Assembly: GCA_030704615.1 (NCBI GenBank)
Contig: CM060733.1
Location: 15,066,001-15,130,000, forward strand
Direction: 5' to 3'
DNA length: 64,000 nucleotides
Source of the DNA: Takakia lepidozioides
Taxonomy: Eukaryota > Plantae > Bryophyta
This document shows, one piece after another, positions 1,033 through 55,523 of the stretch. The notes under the pieces were generated by a model. The model did not search any database and was not told where the DNA came from. It saw nothing but the letters and a program-made list of their open reading frames with translations. The stretch's first letter is position 1. Each line of letters opens with the position of its first letter. Made by a program: the position numbers and the translations under genes.

Positions 1033-4000
1033 TCATTTGTCCAGAGCTGGATGAGAGGGAGAAGTGGCAGCAGTACCCTCTTTAAGCTGCTTCTTTGTCC
1101 GAGCTACCATCTGATTGATGTTCATAATGTACCCATCTACATTGAACTTGCGTTTACAGCCTGCATAATTCATGTACCTAATCTTCCCGAAGACTGGGCG
1201 CTCCTTCCAGCCCTGGGCACCAAGAAACCCAACCAAACAAAGACTTCATTAGCAGTATGAAACCTGATTACATCTCTAAAATATACTCAAGAATCATTGA
1301 CTTTATTTACAACTCAAATGCAGTCCCCAATAAATATAAACAAACAACTGACTCATGCCTGATCATGGATGCCGCAAATGGACCACATGCAGCCGACATA
1401 GCCATTGGGATCCCTTCCATCCAATTCATACTGCATAAACAAGCATTAGAACCAGTCAGATAGAGTACAAGAGCGATCAGAATTACAGTTCCCGAAGAGC
1501 CCACTTCCATCACTATCACATGCATTTTGTCCCTGGGTAGGATAATGACACTAATGGAATCTCCAGAAGATTTGGATAGCATGTATGTACGAAACTTGAG
1601 GGAACTTTCAAACACTAAGATACCTTGTCATTGAGATAAATGGCTATGGCAAGTGCCTCCTCAGGACCAGTTGTCCACTCCAATATCTTTTTGGCCCAGT
1701 ACATTCTGCCGCAATCCATCCCCATTCCCCGTCAGTGCTGATTATACAGCTCAACTCCTGCTACCACAGCCAGAGTTTGATGTGAAATGGACAGAGATTT
1801 CTGTCTGGTCCGCACCCACCCTCTCCTGTTCTAACTCCCTTGCTACACTTCTCTTTCCATTGACCACAAGCTAATTCTGTATCCTGACTGTACATCTAGT
1901 AGAAAAATAAGGATCAGAAACGTTGCATTGTAAGACACTACCAATTTGAAAAGACACATATAGCAACCAGTCTTGAGCCAAGTCAACCCCTCAGCTCAAA
2001 AACATGGTAACTACACTGCTTTGTCACATCTACAAAAATACGGTGTCTTCCAACATATACACGTCTGTGTCTGTGTTAAGAATGTACTCATAAGATGTTG
2101 CTAACCGTAACCTTGTCTGTGTTAACAGAGCGAGAGACAGACAGAGAGAGATGTTTCCTCCCTTCCACACAAAAAGAAAGAATGTACTCATAAGACGTTG
2201 TTTGCCGTAACCTTGTGGCCATTGACCCCGCGCCCAGTTTGAGCGGAAAACACAAAAAGAAAGAGAGGTGTAACTGGTATATATTGATAATCTTTGTCCA
2301 ATACTCACCCAGACCCTCTTTCAAATATTAAAACACAAGTGCATGAATGACAGACCGCATGAAGCCGTGCATTTTTCCGTAGTAAACCATTTCCAGCTGC
2401 GCTGCATTCCACAACTGACCAACAAAAACCTAGTTAACAATCAGAATAGAGGGATCCAAAGTAGGTTGATGGATGTTGTGTTAGTCAAAGTAGAAGTCAA
2501 AAAAGATAATCCAAACTGAATTCAGTAATCCAAACTATATGCAAGCATTACTTCATCACTCTGGACAAACATAGCGTCTCTTCACTGGCAATGGACTGCA
2601 GTTGCACTTACTTCATCATGAGTCTTGCCCTTCTCAAGCTCCTCCCTCCTGCAATCACATGACACATCAGTCGATACCTACAAACCTCACCACAGGGTTC
2701 TCACCAAAGTCACATGGGTCTACTCAGCTTTGGCTACAGGGCTCAACACCTTAAGTTACTCATACCCAAAATCCTCTCATTTAACCAGCTCAAGCTATAT
2801 ACCAATCTGTTGTGACTGTGTGCAGGAGTCTCTGCCCCTTCTCCCCTTCTAGGCCAATGAGGGAGTGAAAGCAGTTCAGAGCAAGTCTATGAAAAATCAA
2901 ATCAGCTTGCCAAGACAGAGAACTTGATGACACACACAATAGAAGAAGCCTTGTCCACTCTGGCCGGATGAACAACCTGACCACTTCTCTATAAACCCAT
3001 CCAATTACAGTCACCACGTTCTGACTAGAGTGGTACTAGTACGTTTACTGTGAAAGACACAACAGGCTAGTTAAGTTCCTTTTCCTTGTTAAAACGTACC
3101 TGTATAAAAATTCACGTTTGTCACCTGCATGCAGCATTAGACTTTCCCGAGCCCAGTTCCAAGCACCCCTTATATTGTCATAGTTGGGCTGATGATAACA
3201 AAAATTCTCTGCTAAGCCTCCTCGAACAATCAACTCCTCCAAGAATGTATCGACAGCCTGCGAAGGGTAAAACCAGAGTGCAATTGAGTACCTAAATATC
3301 AACCAGTTTGGGTATAAATCGTAACTACCAAATCTAATCGCTTACTTGGTTTAGAGGACAAGGCAACTGGAGATAAGAAAACCCCCTAGCGATTTCCAAC
3401 AATTGACTAGCACCCTTTCAGTGCATGTTGAGAGAGCAAGGAATTCTGTGGGCCTACATAAGGTTCCTTGGCATTCCAAAGCTGTGATGGGTTTATTTCT
3501 AACTTGATTGAAGGATTAGACCAAATTCCTTGTCCGTTGAAATAAATGGTAAGATAGTCCTTACCTTTGGATGTACTTTCCGAAATTTACGAGCCTCAAG
3601 GGCACAGCGTTGTGCAGAAATGTGGCCATAGTGCAAGTAAGGGGAGAGGCCAGAAAGGCCAGAGGGTTTGGATGGGTCGTTTCGATTCTCGTAGTGTTTG
3701 ATGCGGCTGTAGACACAATCAACAAAACATGAAGTTGAGTGCATCCAGAAGAAATGCCCAAAAACTAGTAGCGTAGTAGCATACATGTGAATGTGAAAAA
3801 GACACGCTTAACCTTCCTTCAATAGTAACATTAGCAAAGAACCAAGAAGGATGAAGTGTTAAGTTCTTCAATTACAAGCACAGGTACAACTCAGATAGCA
3901 GGGAAAAAGATCAACCAACAACGAAACAACAGACCGGGACACAGCACTGACTTAGACAAATGAAAGCATGAAAGGTGGAACAATACTTGTTAACAAAGCC

Positions 4001-5851
4001 ATTAGTCTTGCCCATAAGGGCCTCCCTAGCTGCATTCTCGCCTGCCTCACACCAGCTTACCTCTGGAACCTCTGCACCCACCCTTCATTGTGCCAGCATA
4101 CCCAGACCTCGGTGTCAAGTGTCAACTCTCAGGTAGCAATTGGATATTTTTCTTTGCAAAACAATGGCTCAACCTTCACTATTTATAACATGAATAGAAA
4201 TCTGCAGCCCCGATTCCATCAGGATACAGCAAGAATGATCATAGAGGTGCAGGAGGAAAACACACCTCAGGACATCAGCAATGAGTGAGTCCCACATGAT
4301 AGTGGGAGGTACTTCAGCATCCCAAGGTTTTCCAGGATTTTCCAAGACTGGAAACTCAACAAGATACTCAGAAAGCTGTCTCTGAATTTTCGTCCGGATG
4401 GTCCGGGCGCCATACTCCAACTTGTCCGAGGCGCGCCACACAGGGACTACATTGTGAGCATCCACCTCAGTCACCTTAACTGAGGGATGCACATTCTTAC
4501 AAATGGCATCCCGCCACATCCGTCCAATTCGAAGAGAAGAGAAGTCCATGACTAGATCAGATGCATCACAGCGTTGGAGGAATTCGGGGATAGTTTCTTC
4601 TGCTTTACCCTGTAGAATGAGAGGCACTGTTTATACAAGGACTGACTTAATCTCATATGAATTTCCGTGGAAAAGGAGCCAATACCTCCAGTACTCATAT
4701 GTCTCACAATAGCAAAATGAATTGCAACTTATCACTGAGTAGGAAAGTAGCAACATGAAGAGATACGGACAGAGATGACAAGGCAGAGCCAAAGATGATG
4801 CAACTACAAAGAATGTTGAACTGGGCGGTGGTGAACAGAGTCCAGTCCAGTCCAGTGCACCAGTCAGTCAGCGAACCCTTCCTGGGCCATTTGTGAGATT
4901 TTCAAACAAGAGCGAAAAGAAAGAATATATACAGTATGCAGAGGGGGCCAGTACCCATGGGGGAGGGGGAGAGAGAGAGAGAAAGAGGATATACCCGAAA
5001 TAAGAAGAACGGTACATTAACTGCCTTCAAGTTGCGTTCCACTACTTGCAGGCCCCGCAACATAAACCCAAAATGACGTGCACGTGCCTCCAAGAAACTG
5101 TCCACCAAATTGAATACAACCGCCACCGAAGCTCCTTTCCGGCGAGCCTGCTCCACTGCGTAAAGCAGCGCCCAATTGTCTTGCGATCGCTGGTCTCTTG
5201 AGAGCCAATAAACTACTGGACCCTTTTTCCCCTCCTTGCCAGGCTTCAAAATGTTGATCCTACCTGCAGGGTTAGATGCAGTAGGCTTAGTTCAAAGTAC
5301 AAATCACACATTATGCAACTTTAGACCCTGTAGGTCTTCCATCATCTGCAGTGGAAACATAGGGGATGTAATGCATTCTTTTTCTAGTCTATGGAGACAA
5401 AAACACAGTTCTAGAACCTTAATGATTGCGACAGTAGCAGTAAACCCCTCACAGCTTCTTGACTGTAATTGGGCATACCTGGATGCACCTCTTTACTCGA
5501 CGACGAGACATTTTCCAATTCGTCAGGCTCTACATCATCCGCCCCTTTCAGCTTCTTGGTTTTCGACTCCCTGAAAGGTGGCGCTGCTTGCGCCTTTCTC
5601 TTGGGCGGCATCTTCCCCTCGTCGGTGCCAGCCTCCAAGCAACAATTGACGTAAGAAAACCCTACTACTTTGAAGCCACGGAAGCGGCTGGATGCCTTCA
5701 GATTCCACGAAACTTCACAGCAGTCACGGAAGGAGGGCCTGAATGCCAATAACGATGACCTGAGCAACTTGAAGCACGCTGCCTCAATGACGAAAAGCGA
5801 TGGCTTGCAACTAAACTGCCGTGGGAATGCACACTGCCCCAGCTTCAGCAT
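1033..5851 (-). CDS. PHR1: Class II CPD photolyase (PHR1/UVR2 orthologue), 11 coding exons
   Basis: Exons 5479-5611 (in-frame upstream ATG at 5851), 4995-5263, 4266-4609, 3987-4082, 3565-3706, 3100-3257, 2612-2648, 2356-2414, 1624-1705, 1359-1430 and 1033-1212 splice in phase. Motifs include [67 protein letters not shown] and [44 protein letters not shown]. Confidence 0.96.
2080..2113 (-). mobile_element. Ultra-short 5'-truncated LINE 3' end (copy A2) in a photolyase intron
   Basis: Minus strand reads aggttacggttagcaacatcttatgagtacattc. Flanked by the direct repeat tgtctgtgttaa at 2068-2079 and 2114-2125. Confidence 0.75.
2182..2249 (-). mobile_element. 5'-truncated LINE 3' end (copy A1) in a photolyase intron
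   Basis: Minus strand reads ttccgctcaaactgggcgcggggtcaatggccacaaggttacggcaaacaacgtcttatgagtacat. Perfect 15-bp TSD acacaaaaagaaaga at 2167-2181 and 2250-2264. Confidence 0.85.
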
Positions 5852-6102
5852 AAAAAAAAACTCACACTCCCTTCCCCTGCTTCCAGCTCCAAAGCTACTC
5901 CAATTACCAAGAACCCCAAGAACAAAAACACAATGTCAATGTCAACACCACAAGCACGACCTTCACAGCGTTCCTGCAACAGATCGTGGCCCCAACGTTC
6001 AAACTGCTCTCAGGAATTGCAGCGTTCATGAGAGAGAGACAAAGACTCGGAGACGATGGAAGAGTTCCCGCCATTATCTTGCAGTGACCACTTGGCAGGA
6101 TA

Positions 6103-6111
6103 TGACGTGGC
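6103..6111. promoter_or_regulatory. ACGT-core C/G-box (TGACGTGGC) in the divergent PHR1/TGD3 intergenic region
   Basis: Motif lies about 250 bp upstream of the first photolyase ATG, and a G-box acacgtgt lies near 6399. These are bZIP/HY5-type sites by established consensus. Function untested. Confidence 0.35.
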
Positions 6112-7086
6112 AGCCTGCGGGCCAAGACCTCGGCTCCGATCTAGACTCAGGTGCGGCGTGTGGGCTTGGTAGTTAGGTTTGGGGTTGTAACAGAGTCCCG
6201 TGAGAATCCTTAATAGAGTCTCGTAGATGCTAAAACAGATTCATACGTAGGCTCTCTAATGTATTCCTATGTAGATGCTCGACGGGAACCTTGGCGTCCA
6301 GACGGATGAGTAGGAGTTCATTCATCCGATACCAAACCGAAAGTAATACTGGTGGCAAATGGCCATGGGTGTTCCGGCGCGCAGCTACTGTTTACCTGAC
6401 ACGTGTCAAATGGGTGACAGGACAGAGAGGAGAGAGAGAGAGAGAGAGAGAGAGACGATGGAAGAATTGTTTGTGAGTAGCTGGCTGCAGGCCTTGATCA
6501 GATGCGTTGATTGATCGTTGTTGCTGTACCTAGATGCTGTTTGATTGTGCATTGTGCGGGGCATGAAGAAGGTAGGCTATTTCTGAGAAACAGGAAGACT
6601 GGCAGACAGGTTCAGCAGGGGTGAAGGACTAGTCGAGCAAGAATGTGTGAGTCACAAGGGGTTTGAAGAGTCGAGGACTGCACACACAGGCGAAGCTACG
6701 GTTGTAAAGATTGAAGAAACTGCGTGGGGATTTGAGAGGAATTTTCAGTTGGCGATGGCTCAGATTCAGAACCTGTTTTAGAAGGTTTTGAAGGGACAAG
6801 GACATTCAGCCGAAGACGGCGTAGGAGAAGAAGAAGGGGAACATTAGTCGTGGAGTTTTCGGAGGGTTTATCTGCATCGTGCAGTGTTGACTGCTAGCAG
6901 AATCAAAGCTAGTATTGAGACCTAATTTGAGAGGACGTTTCCCTTGAGGGAGCATGTGTTGAGGGAGGGTTCTCGATGGCGCTAAAAAATCCGTTTGCAG
7001 TGCACATTTTGAGTCTCAATTGATCTTTGAGCATTTATACCCTATTCGGTTGGTAATAATCTTTGGATTGTGTGTGGACGAAAGAG

Positions 7087-10000
7087 ATGACGGTACCGAC
7101 TTACACTTCTCCGTCTCTTGCAGCTGCTTCCTCGTTAGCGCTACGGTCACCAATGTCATTGTCTTCTCCCCTAACCGCCTCACACTCCACTTCCAATATC
7201 AGTGCCAGCCTTCCCCCGGGCCTGCCGCAGATCATTTGGGATAGACATAAATCTGAAGTTAGCAGATTGTTTTCACTACCATCTGTATCGAGATACGCGC
7301 AGGTTCTGGATCGCCAATACAATGTCGGCTTGGTGCATGAACGGGAGATAGCTCCCATGCATGTGATGTCTGCCTCTTCTTCAGCGTCACAAGCATGCGT
7401 TTCATCGTTGCAGGATGACTCCTCGTCCATGCTTGTAAATGTTAGTCTTTTTCCTCTCGTTTTGTGTTTCTCCAGTTGTGTCTGAAATCTTGTCCACATA
7501 ATTCGTACTCGTGTGTAAATAGTCCTCTTTCTTCTCTCTTCTCGTCATACCTTTCTGCTAGGGCTCATAGGTTTCATTGTGGCATGCACAGTCAAATAAA
7601 CACAGGTATGCAGTGCGGCAGAATTGTCCCTTCCCTTCCCTTCCCCTGAGTTGGGGCTGATTCCGAATTTTAGCTACTTCAAGCCTTCAGCTACCCTTGT
7701 GACTGGAAAAAAGAACAGTCTTTATATTTGCATAAAATAGCTCAATCTAATGAGTTCACCAACAACCGCAAGCTCGACATCTTCAAGGTCCTGATGCACA
7801 GTCACAATTTTCTTCAATGTAGAAACAGGCTGGTGGCAAGGGGAGGCTCTGCAATCACTAAAACTATAACTTCACATCCCTGTGTTTTCGGAAGACTCAT
7901 GGTGTATGAAATTATGTGCTATTATGGTAGATTTTTTTTTTTGCTTCAATGCCCCATGTGGTGTCATCTGCCGGTTGTCTCATATTGTGGTTGGTACTTT
8001 AGGGGATTACAATCATGATTATTACGAGGTTACGGAGCAGATGCAAACCTCCTTTCATGTCTGTATGAACCTATACCTTCCTCAGTAGGACTACTCAGAG
8101 GACCGCGCACAATGAATCGAGAGAAAGAGGCCAATTTTATGAAAGCCATTTGTTGACACGCATATCCTGTGAATGGGACTGGGAGGGCAGCATCACTCGT
8201 CTGTGGATGTTGGGGATGTTGCTCCACCCCAAGCAGCGGCTGTGGAGGAGGATGATGCTGATGTACTCATTGAATGTCGTAATGTTTACAAATCATTCGG
8301 GGAGAAACATATTCTCAGGGGTATTAGCTTCAAGGTAAAAACATTCCCTTGCCATTGGTCAAATTTGCAGGACTTGCCTCATTCTCCCTCTCTCTCTCTC
8401 TCTCTCTCTCTGTTGTTCACTTTTATTCACTTTCTGATTCATGGTCCTGGGTACTCTTACCAGAGATGCCCTCTTCAAATCCTTCAAGGGATTTGTTCCT
8501 GTACGTATGTTTACCAACTTTGAAAATGTTGAGGCTGAGCCAAAAGCCCAGGCCCTTTCGGGGCCTAGTTATTGGGCAAATCACACACAGCAGATTGATG
8601 CTTGTGTAAAGGGAGTTCTAGAGGATATTGTCTGTTCCAAGGTAAGTAATGCTACCGGCGTCAGCCCCTGACAAGGATAGTTTCTGTCCCTTTGTGTTCC
8701 GCTCAAACTGGGCACGAGGTCAATGGCCACAGGACTACGGCCAACAACGTCTTATGAGTACATTCTTTCTCTCTGTCTGGTGTCGAAACTGGGCAGGGGG
8801 GTCTATGGCAAACAAAGTCTTATGAGTACATTCTGTGGTGGAGCGGATGGCTCATTGTTAGATGGTTCTGGGGCTGGGTTTGGGAGTGCGATTGAAAAGA
8901 ACAGATAAGACGTGGTGAGGCATTGGGAATCATAGGTCCCTCAGGCACAGGCAAGTCTACGATTCTGCGGATCATGGCCGGCCTGCTTGCTCCAGATAAG
9001 GTAAAAGGATTGTTATAGTTCTTGGTGAGTTGAGGTGACCCACCAGGAGAAATAAAGCCTCACTGTGATTTGTGAGTCTAGGTTATCCGACTCCTGACTG
9101 CGCTTCTACTGGTCTGCCACTTCCACCGCACCCCCCTTGGGCTCCTTTGGCAGTCAAGAATACCCATGCAACAATCTCCCCTACATCATAGCTCATGTAC
9201 ACTGCTGAAACGCTTTATTGGACAAAAACTTGAGTGGTATTGATGTCTGTAAAAAAGCAGCTCCCTTAGAGTGGCCAATGTCGTTGGACCAATTTGTTAT
9301 TCCCCTATGTCTGAATTCAGAGTTTTTCATTTTGTAAGCTTCCCTTGCTTATCTGAAGTGATGATAGGACCTTGGATATATTCAAGATTTCATATTTGAT
9401 CCTAATATATGCCTCTGAATGGGGATGGGCACTTTCAAAGCCATCTTAAAGCCTCTGACCGATGTTTTAATTTGAAACGGTGCAGGGTGAGGTTTATATC
9501 TGTGGGAAAAAGAGGCACGGCCTAATTAGTGATGAGGAGCTTTCCGGTCTTCGAGTTGGTTTGGTGAGTTGGATTGTTCAATCCTGTGCTGCAGACACAC
9601 TCACTCTGACAAAATGGGGTTGATGTGCTGTGGGTGTTGCTGTACTCTCAACTAGACCCTGAAATGACATCATTTGAACTTTCACCTGACTGCTGATAGC
9701 TATGGCCAATTTCTACAGCCACTTTCGAATCTGGCGATGAGGTCTCAAGTTTATGGAACCTGAAGTATTCATGAGGCTACGGCTGGGGCATGACTGGATG
9801 GTGGCAGGTGTTCCAGAGTGCGGCGCTCTTTGACTCACTAACTGTCCGTGAGAATGTCGGTTTCATGCTGTATGCACCTCTCTTTCAGTTTCGATCCTTT
9901 CCCCTTGCATTTCTTCATGCATGATGTCTGGACACATCATCACATAGTAATTGACCTGCAGTTTTGTAGTGTTCACTATGCATCCTCTTAGAAATTATAG

Positions 10001-14065: not shown

Positions 14066-15545
14066 TTTTATTTTATTTTTATTTATTTTTATTTATTTTT
14101 ATTTATTTTTTCCCGATGGAAGGGCCAAAGATAAGTTATTAATAAACAAGGAAAAAATAACCGCGGACAACAATCTATGAGGAAGAGAAAGGGGGCACCG
14201 CCCCATACCAAAAACCTAAGACATCTGCAGAAAACTATGGATGAGTAGGTCCGCAAGGGGGCTAGGGGGGCGTAGAAGGTGTGTTCTAGTGTTTAGAGGA
14301 GTCAAAAGAAAGGTGGGCCTTCAACTTGCCCTTCCTAAGAGCATCCCCACCCTACACTGAACGCAACACGCCAATGGAATATCATGGTGTGGTGGGCGGG
14401 AAAACGTCCACACCCTTGCACTGAACCCTTATCCCATGAAAAACGGGCACTGAATATCGTTATGTGCACTGAACCCGAGCACCGTGTTCAAGGATCCGAA
14501 TACGCCCCTGAATCCAAGTCAACGTGACCATGCCCAGGTCTAGCACGTGCATGTCAGCAGCTTGGCAACAAGCACGGGCCTCCTGCCAATGGGAGCCGAG
14601 CTGCGCAGGGATAGTGTGGGCAATGTAAGGGCAAGGGTGTGCGCGAGGAGGGGATGCCTCGCCACAGAACCCAACAGGCCTTGAATCGATCACGTAATTT
14701 TGGCAATACAGGGAGCCCTTCGGGCTCAAGGGTGGGGATGCTCTAAGGGTACGCTTGTAACGCCAGTTGGCGTCAAATTCTTTTTGTTTTGCCGATTGAC
14801 GGGCACTAAGAAAGTTGGCAATATGCCGGGAAGCAGTTGTCCCAGATAGAGAGACTCTTGTACATAAGCGCCCGCCTTTTCCCCACGCAGTTATCAAAGC
14901 CAGTGAATAGCTGCATTCTCCTTCTTTCTGCACAGCTGCACACAAGACACGCCATGCTTTTTTTGCTTTAGACATAATGTCTGAGTGAACTCTATGTTGC
15001 ACTAATCTGGCACATGGTCGCCACCCCACATAGACAAAAGAGCATCTACTTTTCCAGATATTACAAAGGGTGTGAGCTCTAAGAGCAGCCCATACAGGGC
15101 ATGAGCTCCAAATAACACCCCTGTCCATGTCAAGGAGCAACACAGAGCTTTGAAAAGAGAAATACGAACACCAGGTGGCATAGAACTTGCTTACCGAAAA
15201 CCAAATGAAGGAATCCAAAGAACAGTCAAGCAGGCAATGCTTAATCGTATCAGAACATCCAGAATTACACAAGGAGCAGGATTGGGTGGAGTCAGAAATG
15301 AAAGAGAACACATGAAGAATACGGTTGACTAGCTTCCAAAGAATCCCACTGATTTTAGCCGCTCTATCCTTCCTCCACACGTCCTTCCAGATAGGCTACC
15401 AATTGACAAGAAAGGAAGGCAAGTGTCTCCACTTGGAATTCCACTTAGTAGAGAAAAGCACCGGAGGTCTTAAGAGGGAGTAGCCGAGTTTCACCAAGTA
15501 AGCAAAGAAGGGGTGATGATCATGCTCACAATTTATTGGGCCATC
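14066..15545 (-). mobile_element. L1-type LINE 3' segment with A-rich tail
   Basis: ORF 14460-15380 has a zf-RVT-like motif (LWKLVNRIL...CSLCNSGCSDTIKHCLLDC...IWKSRC). The minus-strand 3' UTR ends ttaataacttatctttggcccttccatcggg followed by an A-rich tail (T-rich on + at 14066-14111). Confidence 0.75.
14339..14743. mobile_element. PIF/Harbinger (Tourist-like) MITE nested in the LINE
   Basis: Perfect 15-bp TIR GAGCATCCCCACCCT / AGGGTGGGGATGCTC. TAA target duplication at 14336-14338 and 14744-14746. Length 405 bp. Confidence 0.8.
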
Positions 15546-15669
15546 TGGTGGGTCACGACTTAACGGATCATTAATGTTGCGATGTTGTTAAAAGTATGAC
15601 GCCTCCCGAAGGGAGCGTAACTTATGGTGTCACTTGACCCCGAAGGGCTACTGCCTTCCAGCATGCGAT

Positions 15670-16620: not shown

Positions 16621-16667
16621 CTAACTCCCAGATGTCCACTGTAGACAGCACCGAACTGATGTGTTTT

Positions 16668-26016: not shown

Positions 26017-26156
26017 TGGACAAGGGAAGAGGCTCTTATTTACATTGGCTTTCGACTCTTTCTTTTTTCTTTCTTCCTAGTGCCCAAGGCCCATTGGACA
26101 AGGGAAGAGGCTCTTATTTACATTGGCTTCTTTTCTCTTTCTTCCTAGTGCCCAAA
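26017..26156 (+). repeat. Tandem duplication of a ~70-78 bp unit
   Basis: tggacaagggaagaggctcttatttacattggctt...tttcttcctagtgcccaa occurs twice. Confidence 0.85.
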
Positions 26157-37149: not shown

Positions 37150-39432
37150 ACATGTACTGTGTTTGAAATGCGTGTGTGATCCTGGCAGCCCTGCAAAAGG
37201 GCAAAGAGGTCCATGCTGACATTGTCGAAGCTGGAATCGTACCAGATGTTGTTCTGGACGTGCTCTGATGAACATGTATGCAAAATGTTGGAGCATCGAG
37301 GATGCAAAGGGAGTGTTGGACAATATGGCCGAACGAGATGTGGTGTCTTGGACTGCGATGATCACAGCTTATGCACAGCAGGGGCGCGGGATGGAGACTT
37401 TGGAGACCTATCAGCAAATGATGAGGGAAGAGGTGAAGCCCGACCAGATCACCCCAGATTAAGTTTGCAAGGTGTGTGCGAGCCTGGGAGCGAGGCTCAG
37501 CCCTGAGATGCATACTGAATTCTATAAGTTAGCTCGTTGGCTTCTGAAAGAGGATAAAGAGAGGGAGTCCATAATGCCTCTTCTGGCTCTTCTGGGCATG
37601 TGAAGATACTTTGTAAGGTAGGCAGACAGAAAGAGGCTCTACAAACTTTAAACCAAGGAGCAACAGATTCAGATATGTATGTGGTACGATGCTTTGGATG
37701 AGCGAATCATGCACGAAGGGGTGAAGCCGAACCACATCGCCATTATTTGTGTTTCCAATGCGTGTGCAAGCCTGGGAGCCGTGGAAAAGGGGAAAAAAAG
37801 GTCCATGGTGACATCTTCAAAGCTAGAAGTGTACCAGATGTCCATGGCGACATCAACAGAGCTGGAATTGTACCAAATGTCATTCTAAACACTGCCCTAG
37901 TGGACATGTATGCAAATTGTGGGTACATCAAGGATGCAAAGGGAGTGTTCGACACTATGGCTGAACGAGATGTGGTGTCATGGAGTGCGCGATGCTTGCA
38001 GGGTATGCACAACGACGACGTGGGAAGGAGGCTTTGGAGACCTATGAGATGTGGTGTCGTGGAATGCGATGCTTGCAGGGTATGCACAACAGAGACGTGG
38101 GATGGAGGCTTTGGAGACCTATGAGCAAATGATGGGCATGTTTGTGTGCATTTGCAATGCTTGTGCAAGCCTAGCAGCCCTGGAGAAGGGCAAAGAGGTG
38201 CATGGGGATATCATTAAAGCTGGAATTGTACCAAATGGAGTTCTAATTTCCCTCGTATCTCTGGAAAAGGGGAAAGAGGTCCATGGCGACATCTTCAGAG
38301 CTGGAATTGTACCAGATTTCATTCTGAACAATACCCTGATGGACATGTTTGCAAAATGTGGATGCATCTAGGATGCAAAGGGAGTGTTCAACACTATGGC
38401 TGAACAAGATGTGGCGTCGTGCAAGCCTGGCAGCCCTAGAGAAGGGCAAAGAGCTACATGGGGATATCATTAAAGTTGGAATGGTACCAAATGTTATTCT
38501 AAACACTGCCCTGACAGCTCTGGAAAAGGGGAAAGAGGTGCATGGCGACATCTTCAGAGCTAGAATTGTAGCAGATGTCATTCTGAACAAAACCCTGGTG
38601 GACATGTTTGCAAAATGTGGGTGCATCGAGGATGCAAAGGGAGTGTTCAACACTATGGCTGAACAAGATGTGGCGTCGTGCAAGCCTGGCAGCCCTAGAG
38701 AAGGGCAAAGAGCTGCATGGGGATATCGTCAAAGCTGGAATTGTACCAAATGTCATTCTACACACTGTCCTGGCAGCTCTGGAAAATGGGAAAGAGGTCC
38801 ATGGCGACATCTTCAAAACTGGAATTGTACCAGCTGTCACTCTGAACAATACCCTGGTGGACATATTTGCAAAATGTGGGTGCATCTAGGATGGAAAGGG
38901 AGTGTTCGACACTATGGCTGAACCCGATGTGGTGTCGTGGAGTGCAATGCTTGCAGGGTATGGGACGTGCGACGTGGGATGGAGGCTTTGGAGACCTATG
39001 AGCAAATGATGGGGATGCACATCATGTTTGTGTGAGCCTGGCAAAGAGGGCAAAGAGGCAAGGTGCATGGGGATATCATTAAAGTTGGAATGGTACCAAA
39101 TGTTATTCTAAACACTGCCCTGGCAGCTCTGGAAAAGGGGAAAGAGGTGCATGGCGACATCTTCAGAGCTGGAATTGTAGAAGATGTCATTCTGAACAAA
39201 ACCCTGGTGGACATGTTTGCAAAATGTGGGTGCATCGAGGATGCAAAGGGAGTGTTCAACACTATGGCTGACCAAGATGTGGTGTCGTGCAAGCCTGGCA
39301 GCCCTAGAGAAGGGCAAAGAGGTGCATGGGGATATCGTCAAAGCTGGAATTGTACCGAATGTCAAACTGAACACTGCCCTGGCAACTCTGGAAAAAAAGA
39401 AAGAGGTCCGGCGACATCTTCAGAGCTGGAAT
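37150..39432 (+). pseudogene. Array of degenerate PLS-class PPR motifs
   Basis: Repeated NACASLAALEKGKEVHGDIIKAGIVPNVILNTALVDMYAKCGCIEDAKGVFDTMAERDVVSWNAMLAGYAQQ, broken by many frameshifts, stops and deletions. Confidence 0.92.
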
Positions 39433-39436
39433 TGCA

Positions 39437-39492
39437 TTCCACGACACCACATCTCGTTCAGCCATATTGTCGAACACTCCCTTTGCATCCTC
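39437..39492 (-). pseudogene. Inverted PPR fragment marking an inversion junction
   Basis: Reverse complement of gaggatgcaaagggagtgttc..atggctgaacgagatgtggtgtcgtggaa. Confidence 0.85.
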
Positions 39493-40465
39493 CAGCTCCT
39501 TCAGCTATCCATGCCCTTGCACAAATCATGCATTCATCCTTGCCTTGCTGCTAGTAGCTGACAACCTACATTTGTTCTAGGAAACACCCAACTCAGCTTA
39601 TCACACTAGTTCCTATGCTCAATTGCGTCTACTACTCTCTGAAATGTAGCAGGCATTCACCTTTTTGCCTCAGTTGTCCCATCATTGACTGGGGGCAGAA
39701 AAGTATTCATTCCATAGCTTCTCCTCATGTCCGTTACTTGTTTTTTGATACTTTCCTGTTGTCACATAGCAGTATCATATCAAAGTCACTCCAAACTAGA
39801 TTCACTCAACCAGTTAACTTGCATAATTCAACATGGAAATTTTGGACCGATTCTAATAAGAGGGAAAAACAGGGTGAAATGTGCTGAAGAAGATGCCTTC
39901 ATTAACAATGTCTGATTTTATCAATTGTGCCGTTGCTGCCAGTTGACCATCTACCCATGCAGGTTTCTTGTAGCTTCATAGTTAATCTGGAGCTTGAAGT
40001 CTGGCCCTCTTGGGTGAATCTGCACCCACACTCTATCCTTGCTCCTTCAACTATCCATGCCTCGCACGAATCATGCATACAACCTTGCCTTGTTGCTAGC
40101 AGTTGACAATGACAGCCTAGACTTGTTCTAGGAAGCACCCAACTCAACTTATCACACTAGTTCCTACGCTCAATTGTATCTGCTACTCTCTATAATCCAA
40201 CAAACATTCACCTTCTTGCCTCGATTGTCCCACCATTGATTGGGGTCAGAAAAATATTCATTCCACAACTTCTCCTCGTCTGTGTTACCTGTTTCTGATA
40301 CTTTCCTGTTGTCACATTGGCAGAATCATGTCAAAGTCACTCCAAACTATCAAAGCTTCACTCAACCAGCTAACTTGCAGAATTCAGACATGAATAATTA
40401 GGGGCGATTCTGATAAGAGGGGAAAACAAGGTGAAATTGAAGAAGGTGCCTTCATTAGCAGTCAT
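39493..40465. repeat. Tandem ~550-bp non-PPR unit (about 1.8 copies), left arm of a large inverted repeat
   Basis: gctccttca.ctatccatgcc..cacccaactca.cttatcacactagttcc recurs at about 39495 and 40041. Reverse-complement copies lie at 45040-46170. Confidence 0.85.
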
Positions 40466-40622
40466 TACACTCTATCCTTCGCTCAGCCATATTGTTGAAC
40501 ACTCCCTGTCCACAAGGGTATTGTTCATAATGACATCTGCCACAATTCCAGCTTTGACGATGCAACCATGGACCTCTTTGCCCTTCCCCAGCAGGCTCGC
40601 ACATGCACTACAAACGCAAACA

Positions 40623-43100
40623 ACTGGTTGTGGCAAACTGGGAGCAATATGTGTCAGAAGAAACCACTTATACAAATCCACAACTTACAGGCTGTCTCTA
40701 TCCTCAAAATTGGCAGCACATCACCCGCTGCTATGACATATATTGCCCTAGACACACATTGCCCTAACTGCCATCCCCAAGATGCTACCCCCACCAGACT
40801 TCTCTCACTTGGGTCCTTGCAAGGCTGACTTCCAGCTTTGACTCTGTGCATGGGGCCTATCGGACAACATACACTAGCAAGCCCTCCCCATATCCTGCAT
40901 CAACTCATCTCAGTCTTATCAATTGCACAACGTATGATGGGAGTGAGTGCAACATGGGAAAGAGCCACAAACACATGATGAGCTGTAGGGAAGAAGCAAC
41001 ATCGTGCAAGTAAAGCAAATGATGAAGCAGAAAGACGAGGCAACATGGGAGAAGGGAAAATGGGGTCCAAGGGCTGAGAAGGTCAACTGGTCAACAATGA
41101 GGAACTGGCTCTGGAGCACTATGTTGATGATTAAAGGGAGCAGCAAATACATGTGGGGCATCGCAGCAAAGTGCATGCCAACGAGGGTCAGAATAGTGCA
41201 AGAAAGACTCCACGGATGGTGGGCAGCCAAGGGAGATGCAGTGAGACAAGGCACTCATGGCAAGGGAGCTGCCAAGACAAAACTGTTGATTAGGCTACGG
41301 AGAAAGACTGCTGCAAAGAGGTACAAAGACAGGAGCTGAGAATGAGATGTTGCCTTTCGTTGAAGTTCCCCACACAAGGGCTGTTTGGCAAGCAAAACCC
41401 CAGGCAAGGATGAGAGGTGAATCTGGGATAAAACCAGCAGCTGGGAGTGAGGAAAGACACAAGGAAGGGCAACAATACCTTGTCAAATCTGAGGGTGATG
41501 GCTGGAGAAAATTAAACAAGGACTGGAAGTATGGGAGCAGCAATCGCATGAAGAAAAATCTGCCTGAGAGGCTGAAGAGTGAAAGGGAGGAAGACAGGCA
41601 CCTCGCTTATGAAAAGTGGAAGGGCAGGGTAGAAAACCTGATGCCTGAAATTGATGGGAGCTCGTGGGAGACTCTGCCAAGAAGACTCCAATTAGCTGTT
41701 GCCAACAATCGGACCAGTGAAAGATCGCCCTTGGCTGGCGCAACACCACAAAATAAGTGCAGCCCTGATAGTATGGTGAGTGGGGCACCAACAGAGCCAG
41801 AAAATGAGGGAGAAGGAGGAGACTTCCCTGCCAAGAAAGTCAATGCGGGCCTGCAGTGGCATGCAAGGAAAGGGACACCGTAAGTGTTGCCAACAGATGT
41901 AAATCAGTGCTCATTCATTCGAAAGCACCACGAGAGATGAAGGAAAAGACACCTGCAGGGACGTTGAAGCATAAAAGAGGAGAGCACTTCACTTGGGAAG
42001 AAAGTGAAGCATTGGAGAACGAGGCTGATAACTGGCAGTCTGAAAAAGAAAGGCGGTTGTGGGAAACCCTGCCAAGACCCAAGACAACCATATAGAGAGA
42101 ATCAAGCAGGTGGGAACTGCCCTTCATTGGGGTGGTGCAAACAAGAGCAAGACCAGAAGCTGAACTACATGAGAAGATAGTGTGTCATCACAAATGGAGA
42201 CCCTGAAAAATGCTCTGCCCAGGAGATGAAGAACATTAGGCAACTAGAAACGTGGGGGGCTGAATATGCTCTGCAGTCAACTTGGCTTGTTGAATGCTTG
42301 CATAAGAGATGAGGGGTTGCTGTCAGTACACGACATTGAGTTCATCAAATCCTACAACAGCCCACCATCGCTGCCCACTGCTTACACCACAAAAACAGTT
42401 TCACAGGACTTACAGATGATTGGTGGAAGGCAAGGCCCCTCGCCATGGGCCAGATTAATTGTATGTTGCAGCCCAGAACAACGACGGGAAGTCATCTAGG
42501 GCAGCAAACCCCATCTTGGCAGCGTCTTTTGTGTGAGAGAAGTCAAGCTGAACCTGCTCATCATATCGAGTGGGATGGACCAGATGTAAAGCTGCCAAGC
42601 CAACCACACTCATATTCGCACTCAAGCAACATAAGCTGGAGCCATTTTCAGATTATGAGTACCCGCGTTTTAAGAATACTCCTTCTTCAACTTGCGGTGA
42701 ACGGGCAGAAAACTTCACAATGTGCAGCAGATTAATGGACCAAGATGCGGAGCTGAATTGGGTATCCAATTAGGCAATGCTGGTTTCAAAACCCCGTTCC
42801 ATCCCTGCGTTTCAAAGATCTGGCTTGAATGGGCACACTCCGGCAGTGGAAGGCTCACGGAGTAATGAGTTTGGGCTGATATGCATGCTGACATGCCATG
42901 CCGGTGCAAAGAACAACGTTCTGAGTGGCAATTGTGATCTCAAAATCTGCCCCTGCATTCAAGCTGATTTCTCTCTCGAGCAGAGCCGCCTTGTGGATGT
43001 TCCAGCCAGTGTCCAAAAACAGCTCAAGTGCAAGACAACAACATCAGCAAGGCATGGTTAGCTAAGCAAGGTCATGGTGGAGAGGCATTTGAACTCTCTG
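40623..43100 (+). mobile_element. ~2.5-kb insertion splitting a minus-strand PPR motif, with degenerate copia-like sequence
   Basis: PPR sequence ending ...caaacgcaaaca (40622) resumes as aacgtaatgtggtcgg at 43101. Internal RAEKVNWSTMRNWLWSTMLMIKGSSKYMWGIAA and AYEKWKGR weakly resemble the copia integrase core. No LTR pair found. Confidence 0.45.
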
Positions 43101-44125
43101 AACGTAATGTGGTCGGACTTCACCCCCTCCCACATCAACTGCTCATAGGTCTCCAAAACCTGCAATCCCCGCCCCTGTTGTGCATGTCCTGCGATAATCA
43201 CTTTCCACGACACCACATTTCGCTCAGCCATATTGTTGAACACTCCCTATCTAGAAGGGTATTCATGTTCAGAATGACATCTACCACAATTCCAGCTTTG
43301 ACGATGCAACCATGGACCTCTTTGCCCTTCTCCAACAGGCTTGCACATGCACTACAAACACAAACAAAGGTAATGTGCTCGGGCTTCACCCCCTAGACCC
43401 ACATCATTTGCTCATAGGTCTCCAAAACCCGCAATCCCGCCCATGTTGTGCATGTCCTGCGATCATCACGTTCCACCACACCACATTTCGCTCAGCCATA
43501 TTGTTTAACACTCCTTGTCCACAAGGGAATGCTCCCACGTCTGGTACAATTCCAGCTTTGATGATATCCTCATGCACCTCTTTGCCCTTCTCCAGGGCTA
43601 CCAGGCTTGCACAAGCATTGCAAATGCACACAAACATGATGTGCTTCCCCCATCATTTGCTCATAGGTCTCCAAAGCCTCCATCCCACATCCCTACTATG
43701 CATACCCTGCAAGCATCGCACTCCACGACACCACATCTGGTTCAGCCATAGTATCGAACGTACAATTCTAGCTCTGAAGATGTCGCCATGCACCTCTTTC
43801 TCCTTTTCCAAAATTGCCAGGGTAGTGTTTAGAATGACATTTGGTACAATTCCAACTTTGATGATATCCCCATGCACCTCTTTGCCCTTCTCCAGGGCTG
43901 CCAGGCTTGCACAAGCATTGTAAATGCACACAAACATGATGAGCTTCCCCCATCATTTGCTCATAGGTCTCCAAAGCCTCCATCCCACGTCCCTGCTGTG
44001 CATACCCTGCAAGCATCACACTCCATGACACCACATCTCGTTCAGCCACAGTGTCGAACACTCCCTTTGCACAATAGATGCACCCACATTTTGCAAACAT
44101 GTCTACCAGGGTATTGTTCAGAATT
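43101..44125 (-). pseudogene. Degenerate PLS PPR array, inverted relative to 37150-39432
   Basis: Same motifs on the minus strand (NNTLVDMFAKCG..VAERDVVSWSVMLAGYAQQGRGMEALETYEQM; ACASLAALEKGKEVHGDIIK), with frameshifts. Confidence 0.9.
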
Positions 44126-44127
44126 AC

Positions 44128-44890
44128 ATGATCGTAGGATATGCACAACATGGTTGTCATAGGGAGGTCGTGCAACTATTTGAAGGAATGCAAAAGAATG
44201 GCTTAAAGCCGAGCAACATCACCTTTATGTGTTCTCTCTGCATGCAGCCACGCTGGCCTACTGAATGAAGGAAGACACTACTTTGATTCCCGGAGTCAAG
44301 ATCATGGTGTTACTTCGACAGTAAAGCACTTTGGCTGCATGGTGAATCTTCTTGGACGTGAGGGACAACCGGATGAGGCAGTGGACATGATTAATAAAAT
44401 GCCCATAAATCCAGGTGTTGTGGTGTGGAAGGCCTTGCTTGGTGCGTGCAGAATCCATGGCAATGTGGAGATGGTTGAACGTGCAGCAACATCTATCCTC
44501 ATGTGGGCTGAACAGGATGCCACAACTAATGTGTTGCTCTCAAACATCTATGCTGCAGCTGGCAGGTGGGATGATACTGCAAAGGTGAGAAGAATGATGA
44601 AGGTCAAAGGGGTTAGAAACGAGCCAGGTTGCTGCTGCATTGAGGTTGGCAAAAGGGTGCACACCTTCGTTGTAGATGACAAGTTGCATCCCATAATTAA
44701 GGTAATCCATGCTGAATTGAGAAGATTGGCTGGGAAGATGAAGGAGGTGGGGTATGTGCCTGACAGGCGCTTTGTATTGCATGATGTGGGGGAGGAGGAA
44801 AATGAATTTTCTCTTTGCCACCATAGTAAGAAGCTGGCCATTGGTTTTGGCATATCCACGGGAAATGATAGTGGGGTCTACCCAACATAG
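44128..44890 (+). pseudogene. C-terminal P2-L2-S2-E1-E2 and truncated DYW segment of an RNA-editing PPR gene
   Basis: MIVGYAQHG..(frameshift)ACSHAGLLNEGRHYF..CMVNLLGREG..VVWKALLGACRIHGNVE..LLSNIYAAAGRWDD..EPGCCCIEV..HTFVVDDKLHP..GYVPDRRFVLHDV..HHSKKLAIGFG, then loss of homology before the CxxC and DYW end. Confidence 0.9.
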
Positions 44891-45039
44891 GTGAGAAGTC
44901 AGCCTATAATTGCACTTGACTGAAGGGGTGATATTGGACTGACTTTGGTGACAGTGGATGGAATCAGAGCGTTGTCCTAATTCTGGGTTTGGGTGGTATG
45001 ACTGAACGAGATGTGGTGTCATGTTTGTTGCACGAATTC

Positions 45040-49794: not shown

Positions 49795-51315
49795 TCAGAG
49801 TACTCTGAAAAGACTGATCCTCTGCCCCCTGCCGCTGCCCCCTGCTGCTTGAGGTGCCGCCCCAGGAGACTGATTTAATGAAGTTACCTTTGCCCAGCCC
49901 CCCCCAGTGTGAGTATCTAAACCATCGAGATCGTACCCCCTCTCCTGTGCCAGATCACCTGGGGTCCTACCGTCTTTACTCTTTGCATCCTTGCTAGCCC
50001 CACCGTTTAACAGCATCTCGATCAATCCATTGTACCGGAGGGCGGCAGCAATATGAAGTGATGTAGACCCATTGTTATTCTTGGCATTGACATCAGCACC
50101 CTTCCTAATCATCAAGGAAGTGATCTCCTTTTGCCCTCCCTCCACAGCACAATGCAAGGGAGTGTAGCCCTCTTGATCCCTGCGTTCAAGATCACATCCA
50201 GCTGTCTGTAGCAACAGTTTCACAATCTCGTGGTGGCCTTTGAAGGCAGCACGATGGAGAGCAGTCCAGCCGATCTGATCCGCCCCATTGAGAAGGGCGC
50301 CCATCTGCAGGCACCTCTTGACCAGCCTGGCCTCGCCGCGGCGCGCCCTGGATCGCAATGCGTCGCCCAGCGAAAGAGTATCGTAGAGCTCCCTGTGGCC
50401 GGCCACTGAGGCGAGATCCAAGGGGCTCTTTTGTTGACAATCCTTGGCGTCTTTGTTGCCCCCTCTGTCTACCAGCAGCATTACCATGTCCAAATCCCCT
50501 TGGGCTGCAGCTAAGTGTAAGGGGGTCTCCCCAAAAGAACAAGAAGCATTCACATCAGCCCCGTGCTCTAGCAGCAGCTGTACTACCTTGCAGTGCCCTG
50601 CAGCAACCGCACAATGTAGAGCTGTCCAGCCCATGGTCGTTCTGGCAGCAGAGGATGCGCCATTGGCCAAGAGCAGCTCTGTGATCAACGGGTCTCCTGC
50701 AGCAACTGCTTCATGCAGAGCAGTTTTCCTGGCCTGGTTGTAAGCTGTAAGATCAGCCTTGAATTCCAGCAACAATTGAACCAACTCTGGTCGGTTGTAG
50801 CCAATTGCGAGATGCATGGGAGTGCGTCCATGCTCATCTGCGCTGTTGATGTGACCTGGCACGTCTCTTTCCAGCATCTCTCTGATCTCTTCCATGCTTC
50901 TCTGGGATAGCATGTTGCGCAGTATCATTCCCCCCACTAGCACCAAGCGTGGTGCCTTGTCTGAGTACACCTGGTGCATCTTCTTGAACCATTCAAGGTT
51001 CACTACCTCTTTGCTGCTTCCCCCGGGGACCAACACGCTCTGCACTCCAAACCTGTCCAGGACGTAGGGGTAAGAATTTGGAAGTTCAGACTGTGGCAAC
51101 ATCGTAATTTCAACGGTGGCCATGCCCAGAGGTGGGATGATTCCATAAAGTGGCTTTGCAATGTATCTCTTGGATATTCTAGACGGGAATTTTACTTTGA
51201 ATGCAATTGCCATAGTGTGCATCACGCTCCTGATCGTCATAAGCGCTGAAGCACTTCTCTCGAACTCGAAGTCCAGCATCAGCTCCTTTGGTTCTACCAC
51301 CACGAGCCTGTCCAT
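49795..51315 (-). CDS. VAPYRIN-family protein (N-terminal MSP/VAP domain plus ankyrin repeats), intronless
   Basis: MDRLVVVEP..VMHTMAIAFKV..KPLYGIIPPLG..SVLVPGG..WF.K..QVYSD (VAP domain), then GRTPMHLAI..RPELVQLLLEFK, LYDTLSLGDAL..ARRGE, GWTALHRAAFKG and GYTPLHCAVEGG, colinear with recalled VAPYRIN sequences. Confidence 0.88.
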   Translation of the reverse strand: MDRLVVVEPKELMLDFEFERSASALMTIRSVMHTMAIAFKVKFPSRISKRYIAKPLYGIIPPLGMATVEITMLPQSELPNSYPYVLDRFGVQSVLVPGGSSKEVVNLEWFKKMHQVYSDKAPRLVLVGGMILRNMLSQRSMEEIREMLERDVPGHINSADEHGRTPMHLAIGYNRPELVQLLLEFKADLTAYNQARKTALHEAVAAGDPLITELLLANGASSAARTTMGWTALHCAVAAGHCKVVQLLLEHGADVNASCSFGETPLHLAAAQGDLDMVMLLVDRGGNKDAKDCQQKSPLDLASVAGHRELYDTLSLGDALRSRARRGEARLVKRCLQMGALLNGADQIGWTALHRAAFKGHHEIVKLLLQTAGCDLERRDQEGYTPLHCAVEGGQKEITSLMIRKGADVNAKNNNGSTSLHIAAALRYNGLIEMLLNGGASKDAKSKDGRTPGDLAQERGYDLDGLDTHTGGGWAKVTSLNQSPGAAPQAAGGSGRGQRISLFRVL

Positions 51316-52436
51316 ATCTCCCTTCCTGATTCAGTCTTGCTAAACCTGGGGCTTAGGTAAGAGCGCCCACCTTTTCAATCAATTACTCTTCAATACTCCT
51401 TGAATGATAAAATCGCAGCTCTTTTCAAGCCACACTTTGAGAGCAAATGTCTTACGTCAGATGGATTTGGTGTTCTAGTAAGAACTTTGAGAATGTAGAT
51501 TAAGAGCCCACAACGTCTAGACCCAGCTGCCAATGTTACATCTGCACAATGCTGAAGACCACCATGGAGCGACAGAAGGTGATCGCCCACAGAAGAGCTT
51601 TGCCTCATGTTCCGATTCCGACAGGCCGCTGCTCACGACTACTTCATGAATACACCACACCATCTGCCTCAACCCATGCCATCTAGCAAACAGAGACTAG
51701 GACGAGCGTAGATACAACTTTGAAACATTTTGTGTAGGAGGGTACTAGAATCTTTTTCCTGGACGCGCCGTGTTGATTAAGTTATTCGGGATCAGTTTTG
51801 GAGGCGTGCGAGAATCGGTATTCTTGCTCGTCGAGTTAGTCCAAATGACTTACTGTTATTAAACCACCGGCAAGGTCCACAAAGGGCTCTTGGCCTGCCG
51901 TTTGTCCCTAGATCGGGACCAATTTCTCGCAGAGGATCACTAGCAAGAGCAGCAGCACCAGCTCGAGATGGACAAAAAGCATGACACCACAAGACATCTT
52001 TGTTTCCAAATCAGAGTTTCCCTGCAAGATGTTGTGTTGAAGCTGCACGTTGCTGTGAGAATTCCAGAACATGTAGTTGCACCGAAGAGTTTCTAATTTG
52101 GCATTTTCGTCACTCTTACTTTTAAACCAAGAGACAGAAGGAACAGCTGGTCCATCAAGCTATCTTCAGAGTGCACAGACCTCATTTTACATCATCCAAG
52201 TCACAGTAAACGTTGGTGGGGTCTTCAAGGGTTGAGCAGTGTCAAATGGCACTTAATGGCCATCAAGTGGCAGGCAGACTGCCTGTCTCTTCTTTGCCAA
52301 AACTCTTTTTGCATTTTTTATTTAGTCCCTATTTCCAATTGAAGGAGAGAATATATGTACATGGCCTGTAACTTCAGCTCCATTCCGGTCAGAAAATCCT
52401 ATTGCCGTTCAAATTCTGAAACTTGTTGGTGGGAAA

Positions 52437-55400
52437 CTACAATCGCACGACAAAAGCATCAAGAGTGCCATTTTGAGACCTTGGCTTTTTGAAAGAGGGG
52501 TGGGTGCCAGAACCCTCCCTGCTCCTTGTCCGTGAGAAAGTCCTCCCATTAAAAGATCCTGTATTGTTCTCTTGCAAATCCAAGCTTAAAGCCAAATGGT
52601 AGTCTGTGTGCTCCTGTCTTGCTTGGTCAGTTTGTTCAACCAATCGGCCACACTCTCTGCACCTATCTCCATCAAAGCAGGAGTCACTCTCATTGCACGA
52701 TACCTCCAGGGGGGGTGTTGCTAGAGGGGTACCAACTGCAGAGGTCTCACTAGCATCATTCTGCCTATTGTCCATTTGGCAAACCCCTTTGTCACCAGGC
52801 CCGCCACTCTTCCAAGGAAAGCCAAATAGTGAAAGCTGTGTATGGCTTTCAGTGTCAACCTTCGATTTACTATCCCATGATGAGCTCAGCTGGAAAGCCG
52901 ACGCTGGCCGTCTAGACTGAGTGTTGTTCCAACCCATCCAGTTGGCTCCCCCTTCATCTGCACAGCAAAGCACATTTGCCAACCCATGATTTTCACCCAA
53001 ACTTAAAACAGACAGGTCAAAGCAAATTTGTCAATGGGTGTTCCGCAGCCAGCTGACACGGGAAACTAATTAAAATATCGTAAGAACAGGTACAGATAAG
53101 GAATCTGACTTTCAGCCGGCAAATCCGTACCTTCATCCTCACTATTATCAGACAGATCAGAGGTGAATCCGGTTCTCTCATCTGCGGTCACCCCCGAAAA
53201 ATCCTCTAATTGCAGACACTTGGTTTCACCTTCCATCGTGGCAGCTCTGCTGTGCAGCAAGACAGAACCTCTTGGATGGCCCTCTCGATAGATCCGTGCT
53301 TCACGCTTGCTTATAACCGTTAAGCCCATTGTGGATGACCTCTGTTTTACAGCCTGTAACCCTGCACTTACTTCATAACTCAACCTTCTCTCTCCCTTGA
53401 TATTGGCCAGTCCATCGGAGACCACCCCATCTCTACAAAATGCCTCCTGCTGTGAGCCCACTTGCAAGTTTGCAGAGCTATTTCCAAACCCGTCCACCAC
53501 AGGAGTTTGTAAAAATAAGCGAATGTCACCGGCAGATGAGATCCCCTTGGACGCATCACTAAAGCCTGTGGCCCCAATATTGAGAACCACCATACAAAAT
53601 GAGCGGCCACTTAGACTGTGAAAAAGGAGCCTCATTCCTGCTTCAACTGCAACCTCTCTTCGCTTATCTGCTGGCAGGGAGGTGCAAAGGAGTTCTGGAG
53701 GCATAGGCCCTGATACACTCCTGAAATTCCTTCATGCCCAGAGAGAACTCGACCAAATGATATTAGTGACCTGAGGTATTCGGTTATCCAATATCCTCAC
53801 CCTCAAAAAGTGAACAGAAGGTGAGATGACATTGAGTGTTGAGCATCCATGGAGCAAGTAAATGAGGAACACTGTGGGCACATCATCCACCTTAAAAAAT
53901 CACACAACTGGGTCCTCCTTGTGCTTCTCTATCTGTATCTATTTTTCCATCTCCTGGCCGGCATTCTTTAATGTGAGTGCAAGTGGGAACAGTCCCATAG
54001 GGGTGTAATAATACTCTTGGCGGGAGTGTTACTTTTACTACAATGTTGCATTTGTTTCAAAACCAGCTGCTCCAAAGCTCAACAATGCAAAAAGGGACAT
54101 GTTGGGTTTGACACAGGGGAGTGAGACCATCACCCAGACAGGAGAAGTTACATCTTGCAGGGTCTATGACTGCTTACCAGACACCTTTGCTGCGCCACTT
54201 TATGGTCAAAACTTTAGGGGTGCGCCCAGTTTCTGCCTTATCTTCATCAAGACGATGAACCAAGTCGGGTGCAAGCGACCGCATTATTCCCTGCCCACAC
54301 ACCAAATGTATGATAACCCATTGAGAAAAGACTGCGACAACAAAAGTACAGTTTACAGGAATTTAGAGTGCTCGGTGATGAGTGATTAAGTCTGTATTCT
54401 GTTGCTATAGGAATAACTTTTCACCCTTAGAGGGGGAGGGACTCCAGCCGACGCCAGTGTAAATAAGCCACAGCCCCCAGGGTGCTGTTCCTCCCCCACA
54501 GAGAGTAACCATTCCATGCGTGTCATGCTAGCCATAGCTCCAGCCACTCTGACAGGAACAAATAGTATGTAAAAGTAAGTGCTTACGGCTGTCTGCTGAA
54601 ATGTAGAGGAATTGACTGTAATATAAAACCGACATGAATGAATTACTAAAAATGTTCCCTTTGCCACAAAAACACTCGTCCCTGTCCCAAAAGAGCAACA
54701 GTAAAGAATGAACTACCTCAACTTGTGGAAGTGTTGTGCACATTCTGAAGGAATCTTCAACAGAGAGTGATTTGGGGGGACCTTTGTCACACACTGGTGT
54801 GCCATCATACCCTCGGCACGCATGGTACAGAAACACCCCTATTCGCTCTCCTAACCTGTCATTGAACCCCATGACCAATAAGCCCTCTCATCATAACCCC
54901 ATATATTGATAGCGAGAAGACGAAGGTCTCACTTAGCAAGGGGAAATGAGGAAATCAGAATACTGCTAATAAATTTCATCCAAAATCACGAGAGAAAGAG
55001 AGAGAGAAAGCAAGATCCTTGGGGAAGTAGAACAACACAGTGGACTAAAGAGAAATCAATGACCACCTCAAAGCTCAAATGTTGCACAAAGGCAGGGGAC
55101 CTCGTGGAGGTGAGCAGCTAGCATCTGGGGTCCTCATAGCTCAAGGCCTCTGCCAGGGACGGGGAACACAGAGCAAGAGAGAGAATGTACTCATAAGACG
55201 TTGTTTGCCGAGCCTTGTGGCCATTGACCCCGCGCCCAGTTTGAGCGGAAACCAAAGGGACAGAACCTACCTCTGTCAGGGGCAGACGTTGGTAGTAAGA
55301 CTTACCTTGATACATAGAATTGATCCGGGTTTTCCAGATATCCTCTAGAAATCCCTTCACACAAGCATCAATCTGCTGTGTGTGATTTGCCCAAAAACTA

Positions 55401-55482
55401 GGCCTCAGAAGGGCCTGGGCTTTTGGCTCAGCCTCGAGACTTTCAAAGTTGGTACACAGAGGTACAGGCACAATTCCCAGAG

Positions 55483-55523
<41 letters not shown>

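Follow-up and report, generated by a model that had tools for sequence, protein, structure and literature searches.

We examined a 64,000-nt window of the Takakia lepidozioides genome (GCA_030704615.1, CM060733.1, 15,066,001-15,130,000; all coordinates are those of the window), in which introns of a photolyase gene, of TGD3 and of the Pol iota gene hold five short sequences with one common 3′ end. These are probably five old, 5′-truncated retrocopies of a single tail-less long interspersed nuclear element (LINE), which would choose TCT/CT targets and take its orientation from the strand that carries the CT run. Host exons were read one at a time, not as a joined spliced model, and the introns and the copies that they enclose are as follows.

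~2355 to ~1704, minus strand: photolyase intron, between the exon that ends in ..GKMHGFMR at ~2355 and the next exon, which starts at ~1704; encloses copies C and D
8336 to ~8906, plus strand: TGD3 intron, between the exon that ends in ..GISFK at 8336 and the next exon, which starts at ~8906; encloses copies A and E
~55525 to ~54887, minus strand: Pol iota intron, between the exon that ends in ..GHLSQKW at ~55525 and the next exon, which starts at ~54887; encloses copy B
8414-8766, plus strand: copy A, ~353 bp, the longest, in the TGD3 intron
~8785-8834, plus strand: copy E, ~50 bp, in the TGD3 intron, 18 bp behind copy A
55182-55477, minus strand: copy B, 296 bp, in the Pol iota intron
2179-2249, minus strand: copy C, 71 bp, in the photolyase intron
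2079-2113, minus strand: copy D, 35 bp, tail-only, in the photolyase intron, 65 bp downstream (in the sense direction) of copy C

The common end is marked by the 18-mer GTCTTATGAGTACATTCT, which is present in the window at 2079-2096(-), 2179-2196(-), 8749-8766(+), 8817-8834(+) and 55182-55199(-), each time with at most one mismatch. Against these five occurrences, shuffled sequence gives a chance expectation of 0.07 matches, even when up to three mismatches are allowed. Self-BLAST and alignment showed that the five copies are nested, sharing the 3′ end and differing at the 5′ end, with lengths from ~35 to ~353 bp. Copy A carries a 19-nt deletion and frameshifts, as seen by alignment and by reading of its open reading frame (ORF), and reaches in the 5′ direction up to the HFL..(C)..R.ALF part of a CCHC knuckle; copy E has a 13-nt deletion inside. 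Identity is 81.6% between copies A and B (304 bp) and 93.8% between copies C and B (81 bp), thus the insertions are old and of differing ages. A poly(A) or simple-repeat tail was found in none of the five copies, each of which closes with a single ..ACATTCT, followed at once by the target-site duplication (TSD), and the family stop codon, a TGA kept in copy C, lies 9 nt before the end of the element. The first-pass annotation of this DNA had described a tail-less element with a fixed 3′ end and variable 5′ truncation in five copies, and both parts of that description hold.

Each of the five copies is in sense orientation to its host gene, and the hosts lie on both strands; our exon reading agrees with the earlier placement of the copies, all sense, in introns of the photolyase, TGD3 and Pol iota genes. 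In being intronic, sense to the host and flanked by TSDs the copies resemble introners, which are transposons that give rise to new introns, and that reading was rejected because the splice sites of the host introns (~8337/8905, 2354/1705 and 55525/54888) all fall outside the copies. The copies fill part of the intron, and they are 5′-truncated retrocopies of a coding element rather than unit-length carriers of splice sites. Copies A (8641-8680) and B (55275-55315) also contain a string of the form GTAAGT...CTGAC...TAG, ~39-45 nt long and sense to the host intron, which was considered as a mini-intron and rejected, since the ORF of copy B reads through it and plant introns are longer than 39 nt. 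A doubtful sixth piece, at 27605-27633 on the plus strand, may be an additional tail-only member of the family; it consists of GTCTTATGAG and TCTTATCAGGACATTCT with two mismatches, and no CT tract adjoins it.

Target-site duplications and CT-rich targets

The duplications and the target tract of copy A are listed below.

55478-55493 (5′) and 55169-55184 (3′), minus strand: TSD of copy B, 16 bp, exact, TCTCTCTCTTGCTCTG
2250-2264 (5′) and 2167-2181 (3′), minus strand: TSD of copy C, 15 bp, exact, TCTTTCTTTTTGTGT
2114-2125 (5′) and 2068-2079 (3′), minus strand: TSD of copy D, 12 bp, exact, TTAACACAGACA
8401-8413 (5′) and 8764-8776 (3′), plus strand: TSD of copy A, 13 bp, one mismatch
8382-8413, plus strand: (CT)n target tract of copy A, the last 13 nt of which (8401-8413) are the 5′ TSD

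The exact duplications of 12, 15 and 16 bp annotated earlier were recovered at copies D, C and B, copy A adds the imperfect one of 13 bp, and the TSD of copy E is ambiguous. The copies also lie beside CT tracts, as had been noted: for copies A and B the insertion point is in the 3′ part of a pure (CT)n tract, of 30 nt for A and 34 nt for B, the 5′ TSD of copy B running into the tract at 55484-55517, the target of copy C is a 15-nt CT tract, and copy D adjoins an imperfect CT-rich run. The CT run is on the sense strand of the element in every case (n = 5 copies). Read on that strand, the TSDs of copies A, B and C start with TCT, which is the same as the last 3 nt of the element; hence the RNA end and the target overlap by ~3 nt. 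At copy D the 5′ TSD is preceded by CTCTG, which assigns ..ACATTC to the element and not to the target.

The window has four long (CT)n tracts, and copies occupy two of them. Three of the four can be assigned to a gene, and all three lie on the sense strand of that gene. The unoccupied tracts, at 6424-6455 and 4959-4989, have CT on the minus strand and are located in or upstream of the photolyase gene.

Encoded protein, its relatives and neighbouring genes

The ORF of copy B is open from end to end, and a 1-nt deletion near its end carries the frame past the family stop. Pfam gave nothing useful for the ORFs of copies A and B, and a phmmer search with the ORF of copy B against 1.84 billion representative proteins returned only two short fragments, P0121 (E = 8e-6) and P0122 (E = 5e-5), and no long protein bearing a reverse transcriptase (RT). 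Word searches with a profile and with residues 1-150 of P0123 yielded no additions beyond P0123 and P0124. Just upstream of the matched part, P0121 and P0122 carry a C-x2-C-x7-8-H-x4-C knuckle, and the 5′ part of copy A aligns with the HF..C...R.AL segment of this knuckle in the relatives. Their zf-RVT matches are weak (E = 8e-4 and 0.022, under the Pfam cut-off), and among the ESM Atlas neighbours of P0121 are zf-RVT clusters by features and RVT_1 and RNase_H/zf-RVT clusters by structure. Because the relatives show this knuckle and zf-RVT similarity, and because the copies are 5′-truncated and flanked by TSDs, the best reading of the ORF is the C-terminus of an ORF2-type protein of a non-LTR (long terminal repeat) retrotransposon, which is consistent with the earlier view of the peptide as a LINE ORF2 C-terminus.

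Searches further from the window gave little more. No RT was found upstream of the relatives on their contigs (L001, L002/L003, L007 and L008), a protein-pattern scan of the metagenome contigs gave no match, and a DNA-pattern scan for the conserved 3′ module described below gave three chance matches, L004 and L005 being unrelated coding DNA and the third, L006, a contig labelled as human-gut metagenome. When the relatives were compared with the window by tblastn, no further copies and no RT-bearing copy were found. The AlphaFold model of P0121 had a mean pLDDT of 57, and Foldseek against PDB returned nothing better than E = 2.

One distant relative, L001, comes from a metagenome in ENA and encodes a protein that is ~42% identical to that of the Takakia family. 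The last ~55 nt of the two elements are 75% identical, compared with 48% upstream, and the end of the L001 element (..TATGAGGACATTA) abuts (TA)n (L001 572-680). Together these features suggest that the 3′ end comprises a conserved module acting in cis, which the enzyme may recognise, followed by three terminal nucleotides that agree with the local target repeat. After the end of the L001 element there is a short repeat of its GGACAT..TATATA end and then a stretch corresponding to region 585-597 of the element itself. This suggests that truncated copies may be stacked head to tail in the organism of L001 as well.

The window also contains a fragment of a different, plant L1-type LINE, namely a 306-aa ORF at 14460-15380(-) with a zf-RVT knuckle (E = 3e-5, just under the Pfam cut-off) and without the TCT-ending tail. 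An intronless gene at 49795-51315(-) encodes a VAPYRIN-like protein of 506 aa of the MSP plus ankyrin-repeat type, the best matches of which, in Marchantia paleacea, Diphasiastrum and Calypogeia (liverworts and a lycophyte), are only 47-48% identical; the host species is thus seemingly absent from the protein collection. ORF pieces with PPR, E-motif and DYW-deaminase similarity are spread over several frames at 38349-44890(+) and may represent one or two PPR editing-factor genes, possibly broken. An exon-sized ORF at 21317-21694(+), with a weak match to the SGT1/ecdysoneless family (E = 1e-4), suggests a plus-strand gene around 19-24 kb.

Insertion mechanism and orientation

The fixed 3′ end, the variable 5′ truncation and the TSDs support target-primed reverse transcription, as proposed in the first-pass annotation, and the overlap of the element end with the TCT of the target fits its proposal of microhomology priming at CT-rich DNA. 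We suggest that an endonuclease nicks the strand opposite TCT within CT-rich DNA, and that the terminal ..UUCU of the element RNA then pairs with the freed DNA end, at which reverse transcription would start. With such direct priming a tail would not be needed, and none would be added. The enzyme probably recognises its own RNA through the conserved last ~55 nt, and reverse transcription would mostly abort early, leaving tails of 35-350 bp. Moreover, each insertion would rebuild a TCT site behind itself, on which later copies could stack head to tail, and the strand that carries the CT run would set the orientation. Copy E sits in the rebuilt CT-rich TSD region of copy A.

The shortest pieces might have another origin. 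If those of 35-71 bp belonged to a tail-only retroposon of their own, one that is non-autonomous and moved in trans by the LINE enzyme by way of the common 3′ end, the number of copies of at most 71 bp (3 of 5) would be accounted for, as would the finding that conservation between families is highest in the last ~55 nt. Such a retroposon should have a fixed head, however, and each short copy has a different 5′ end (lengths of 35, 50 and 71 bp), as random abortion predicts; moreover, copies A and B extend colinearly into the ORF. We therefore consider a second retroposon very unlikely, and regard the short pieces as early-aborted products of the one LINE.

Several observations weigh against the account of a tail-less LINE that is guided by its RNA end to CT-rich DNA. 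The target of copy D starts with TTAAC and not with TCT, so the preference for TCT is not absolute, and the use of CT tracts looks like a preference rather than a strict specificity. The RNA fold of the 3′ end is not significant compared with shuffles (z from -0.1 to -0.65), and because of this the 3′ module is drawn from conservation alone. The window, protein, contig and metagenome searches found no RT or endonuclease of the family, and the label 'LINE' is based on insertion anatomy and on zf-RVT similarity below threshold. Microhomology of the RNA end and specificity of the endonuclease are inseparable on the strength of sequence alone. Finally, target asymmetry is a weak explanation of the sense orientation within the window. 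Target motifs were counted by strand in the three host genes only, because Pfam annotation of the remaining window gave almost nothing. With the copies alone masked, the sense:antisense counts were 341:233 for TCT and 63:32 for TCTCT; when the occupied tracts were masked too, they were 290:227 for TCT, 29:32 for TCTCT and 24:16 for runs of at least 10 pyrimidines. The sense excess thus comes mainly from the occupied tracts, and the general asymmetry of targets in the window is weak.

These counts bear on whether the element seeks introns. The first-pass annotation had read the copies as intron-restricted, sense-oriented, safe-harbour targeting, and this part of it does not stand: since A is stacked with E and C with D, the independent loci number only three, and the probability that all three are sense at even odds is 0.125. 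A true intron- or transcription-coupled sense integration, linked to transcription, R-loops or splicing and going beyond what the strand and location of CT targets predict, would have to be seen behind these same three loci. The large share of introns in this gene-dense window makes three intronic loci out of three unremarkable, and the three gene-assignable long (CT)n tracts, all on the sense strand, already predict sense insertions. On the other side, every copy (5/5) lies in an intron and in the sense direction, in genes of both strands, and with the occupied tracts masked antisense CT-rich targets are nearly as common in the host genes, yet no antisense copy is present. On balance we hold such coupling to be very improbable; if it were true, the family would be a land-plant LINE with introns as its safe harbours.

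Selection after insertion could also leave a sense intronic pattern. Distributions of transposable elements within genes are commonly shaped by selection, and if insertions occurred at CT-rich sites everywhere and in both orientations, with persistence only of short, sense, intronic copies free of polyadenylation or strong splice signals, then the age (81.6% identity between A and B), the shortness and the missing poly(A) tract of the present copies would be expected. This survivorship leaves unexplained the CT run on the sense strand of each copy and the TCT common to element end and TSD; intergenic copies should be tolerated, not purged, and copies A and B, with their sense GTAAGT...CTGAC...TAG strings, are not free of splice-like signals. 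We give it very little credence. Under the preferred account of TCT/CT target choice, the data fit an orientation that follows the CT-bearing strand, and an extra bias towards introns is compatible with them but not required. We infer that the intron and sense pattern arises, in a very small sample, as a side effect of target choice and stacking, and not from intron seeking.

Relation to known elements

The (TC)n-specific fish elements named Kibi, which are APE-type LINEs described by Kojima and Fujiwara, and other microsatellite-specific LINEs have been published (as summarised in PMC3812793). Kibi and the Takakia family both land in TC/CT dinucleotide repeats with an orientation fixed by the strand of the repeat, whereas Kibi is an animal element of another lineage and the Takakia family also uses imperfect CT-rich sites and, once, TTAAC. 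The absence of poly(A), the very short 3′ untranslated region (UTR) after the stop codon, the many 3′-only copies, the association with simple repeats and the existence of non-autonomous relatives with the same 3′ end are features that the Takakia family has in common with RTE and RTE-X elements, the clade suggested for it in the first-pass annotation. Kibi itself belongs to the Tx1/L1 group. The RTE of Lepidoptera has an extremely short 3′ UTR of the simple sequence repeat type, abundant 3′ partial copies and a microsatellite association (PMC2887409), RTE-X families are present in Chlorella and Ectocarpus, which are green and brown algae (bioRxiv 10.1101/2024.02.27.582245, PMC12477816), and the LINEs of land plants comprise L1 and RTE only, according to a review (PMC9033089). 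The published 3′ ends of RTE are short tandem repeats, whereas the Takakia family ends, in all five copies, in a single TCT with no repeated unit. Moreover, the relatives of the Takakia family have a post-RT CCHC knuckle, which to our knowledge is not a feature of classical RTE.

Our literature search found no published CT-tract-preferring, tail-less LINE in a land plant. The behaviour as such had been put forward as new, a claim that has to be given up, given the published RTE with a minimal 3′ UTR and abundant 3′ partial copies (PMC2887409) and the (TC)n-targeting LINEs (PMC3812793); CT-preferring behaviour is already known from animals. The family remains a clear case of agreement between the RNA end of a LINE and its target. 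For annotation, its short tails explain part of the repeats in Takakia introns and beside CT microsatellites. The TCT-ending family and its (TA)n-abutting relative, which have the same 3′ module, would provide a possible system for the role of the RNA end in site choice.

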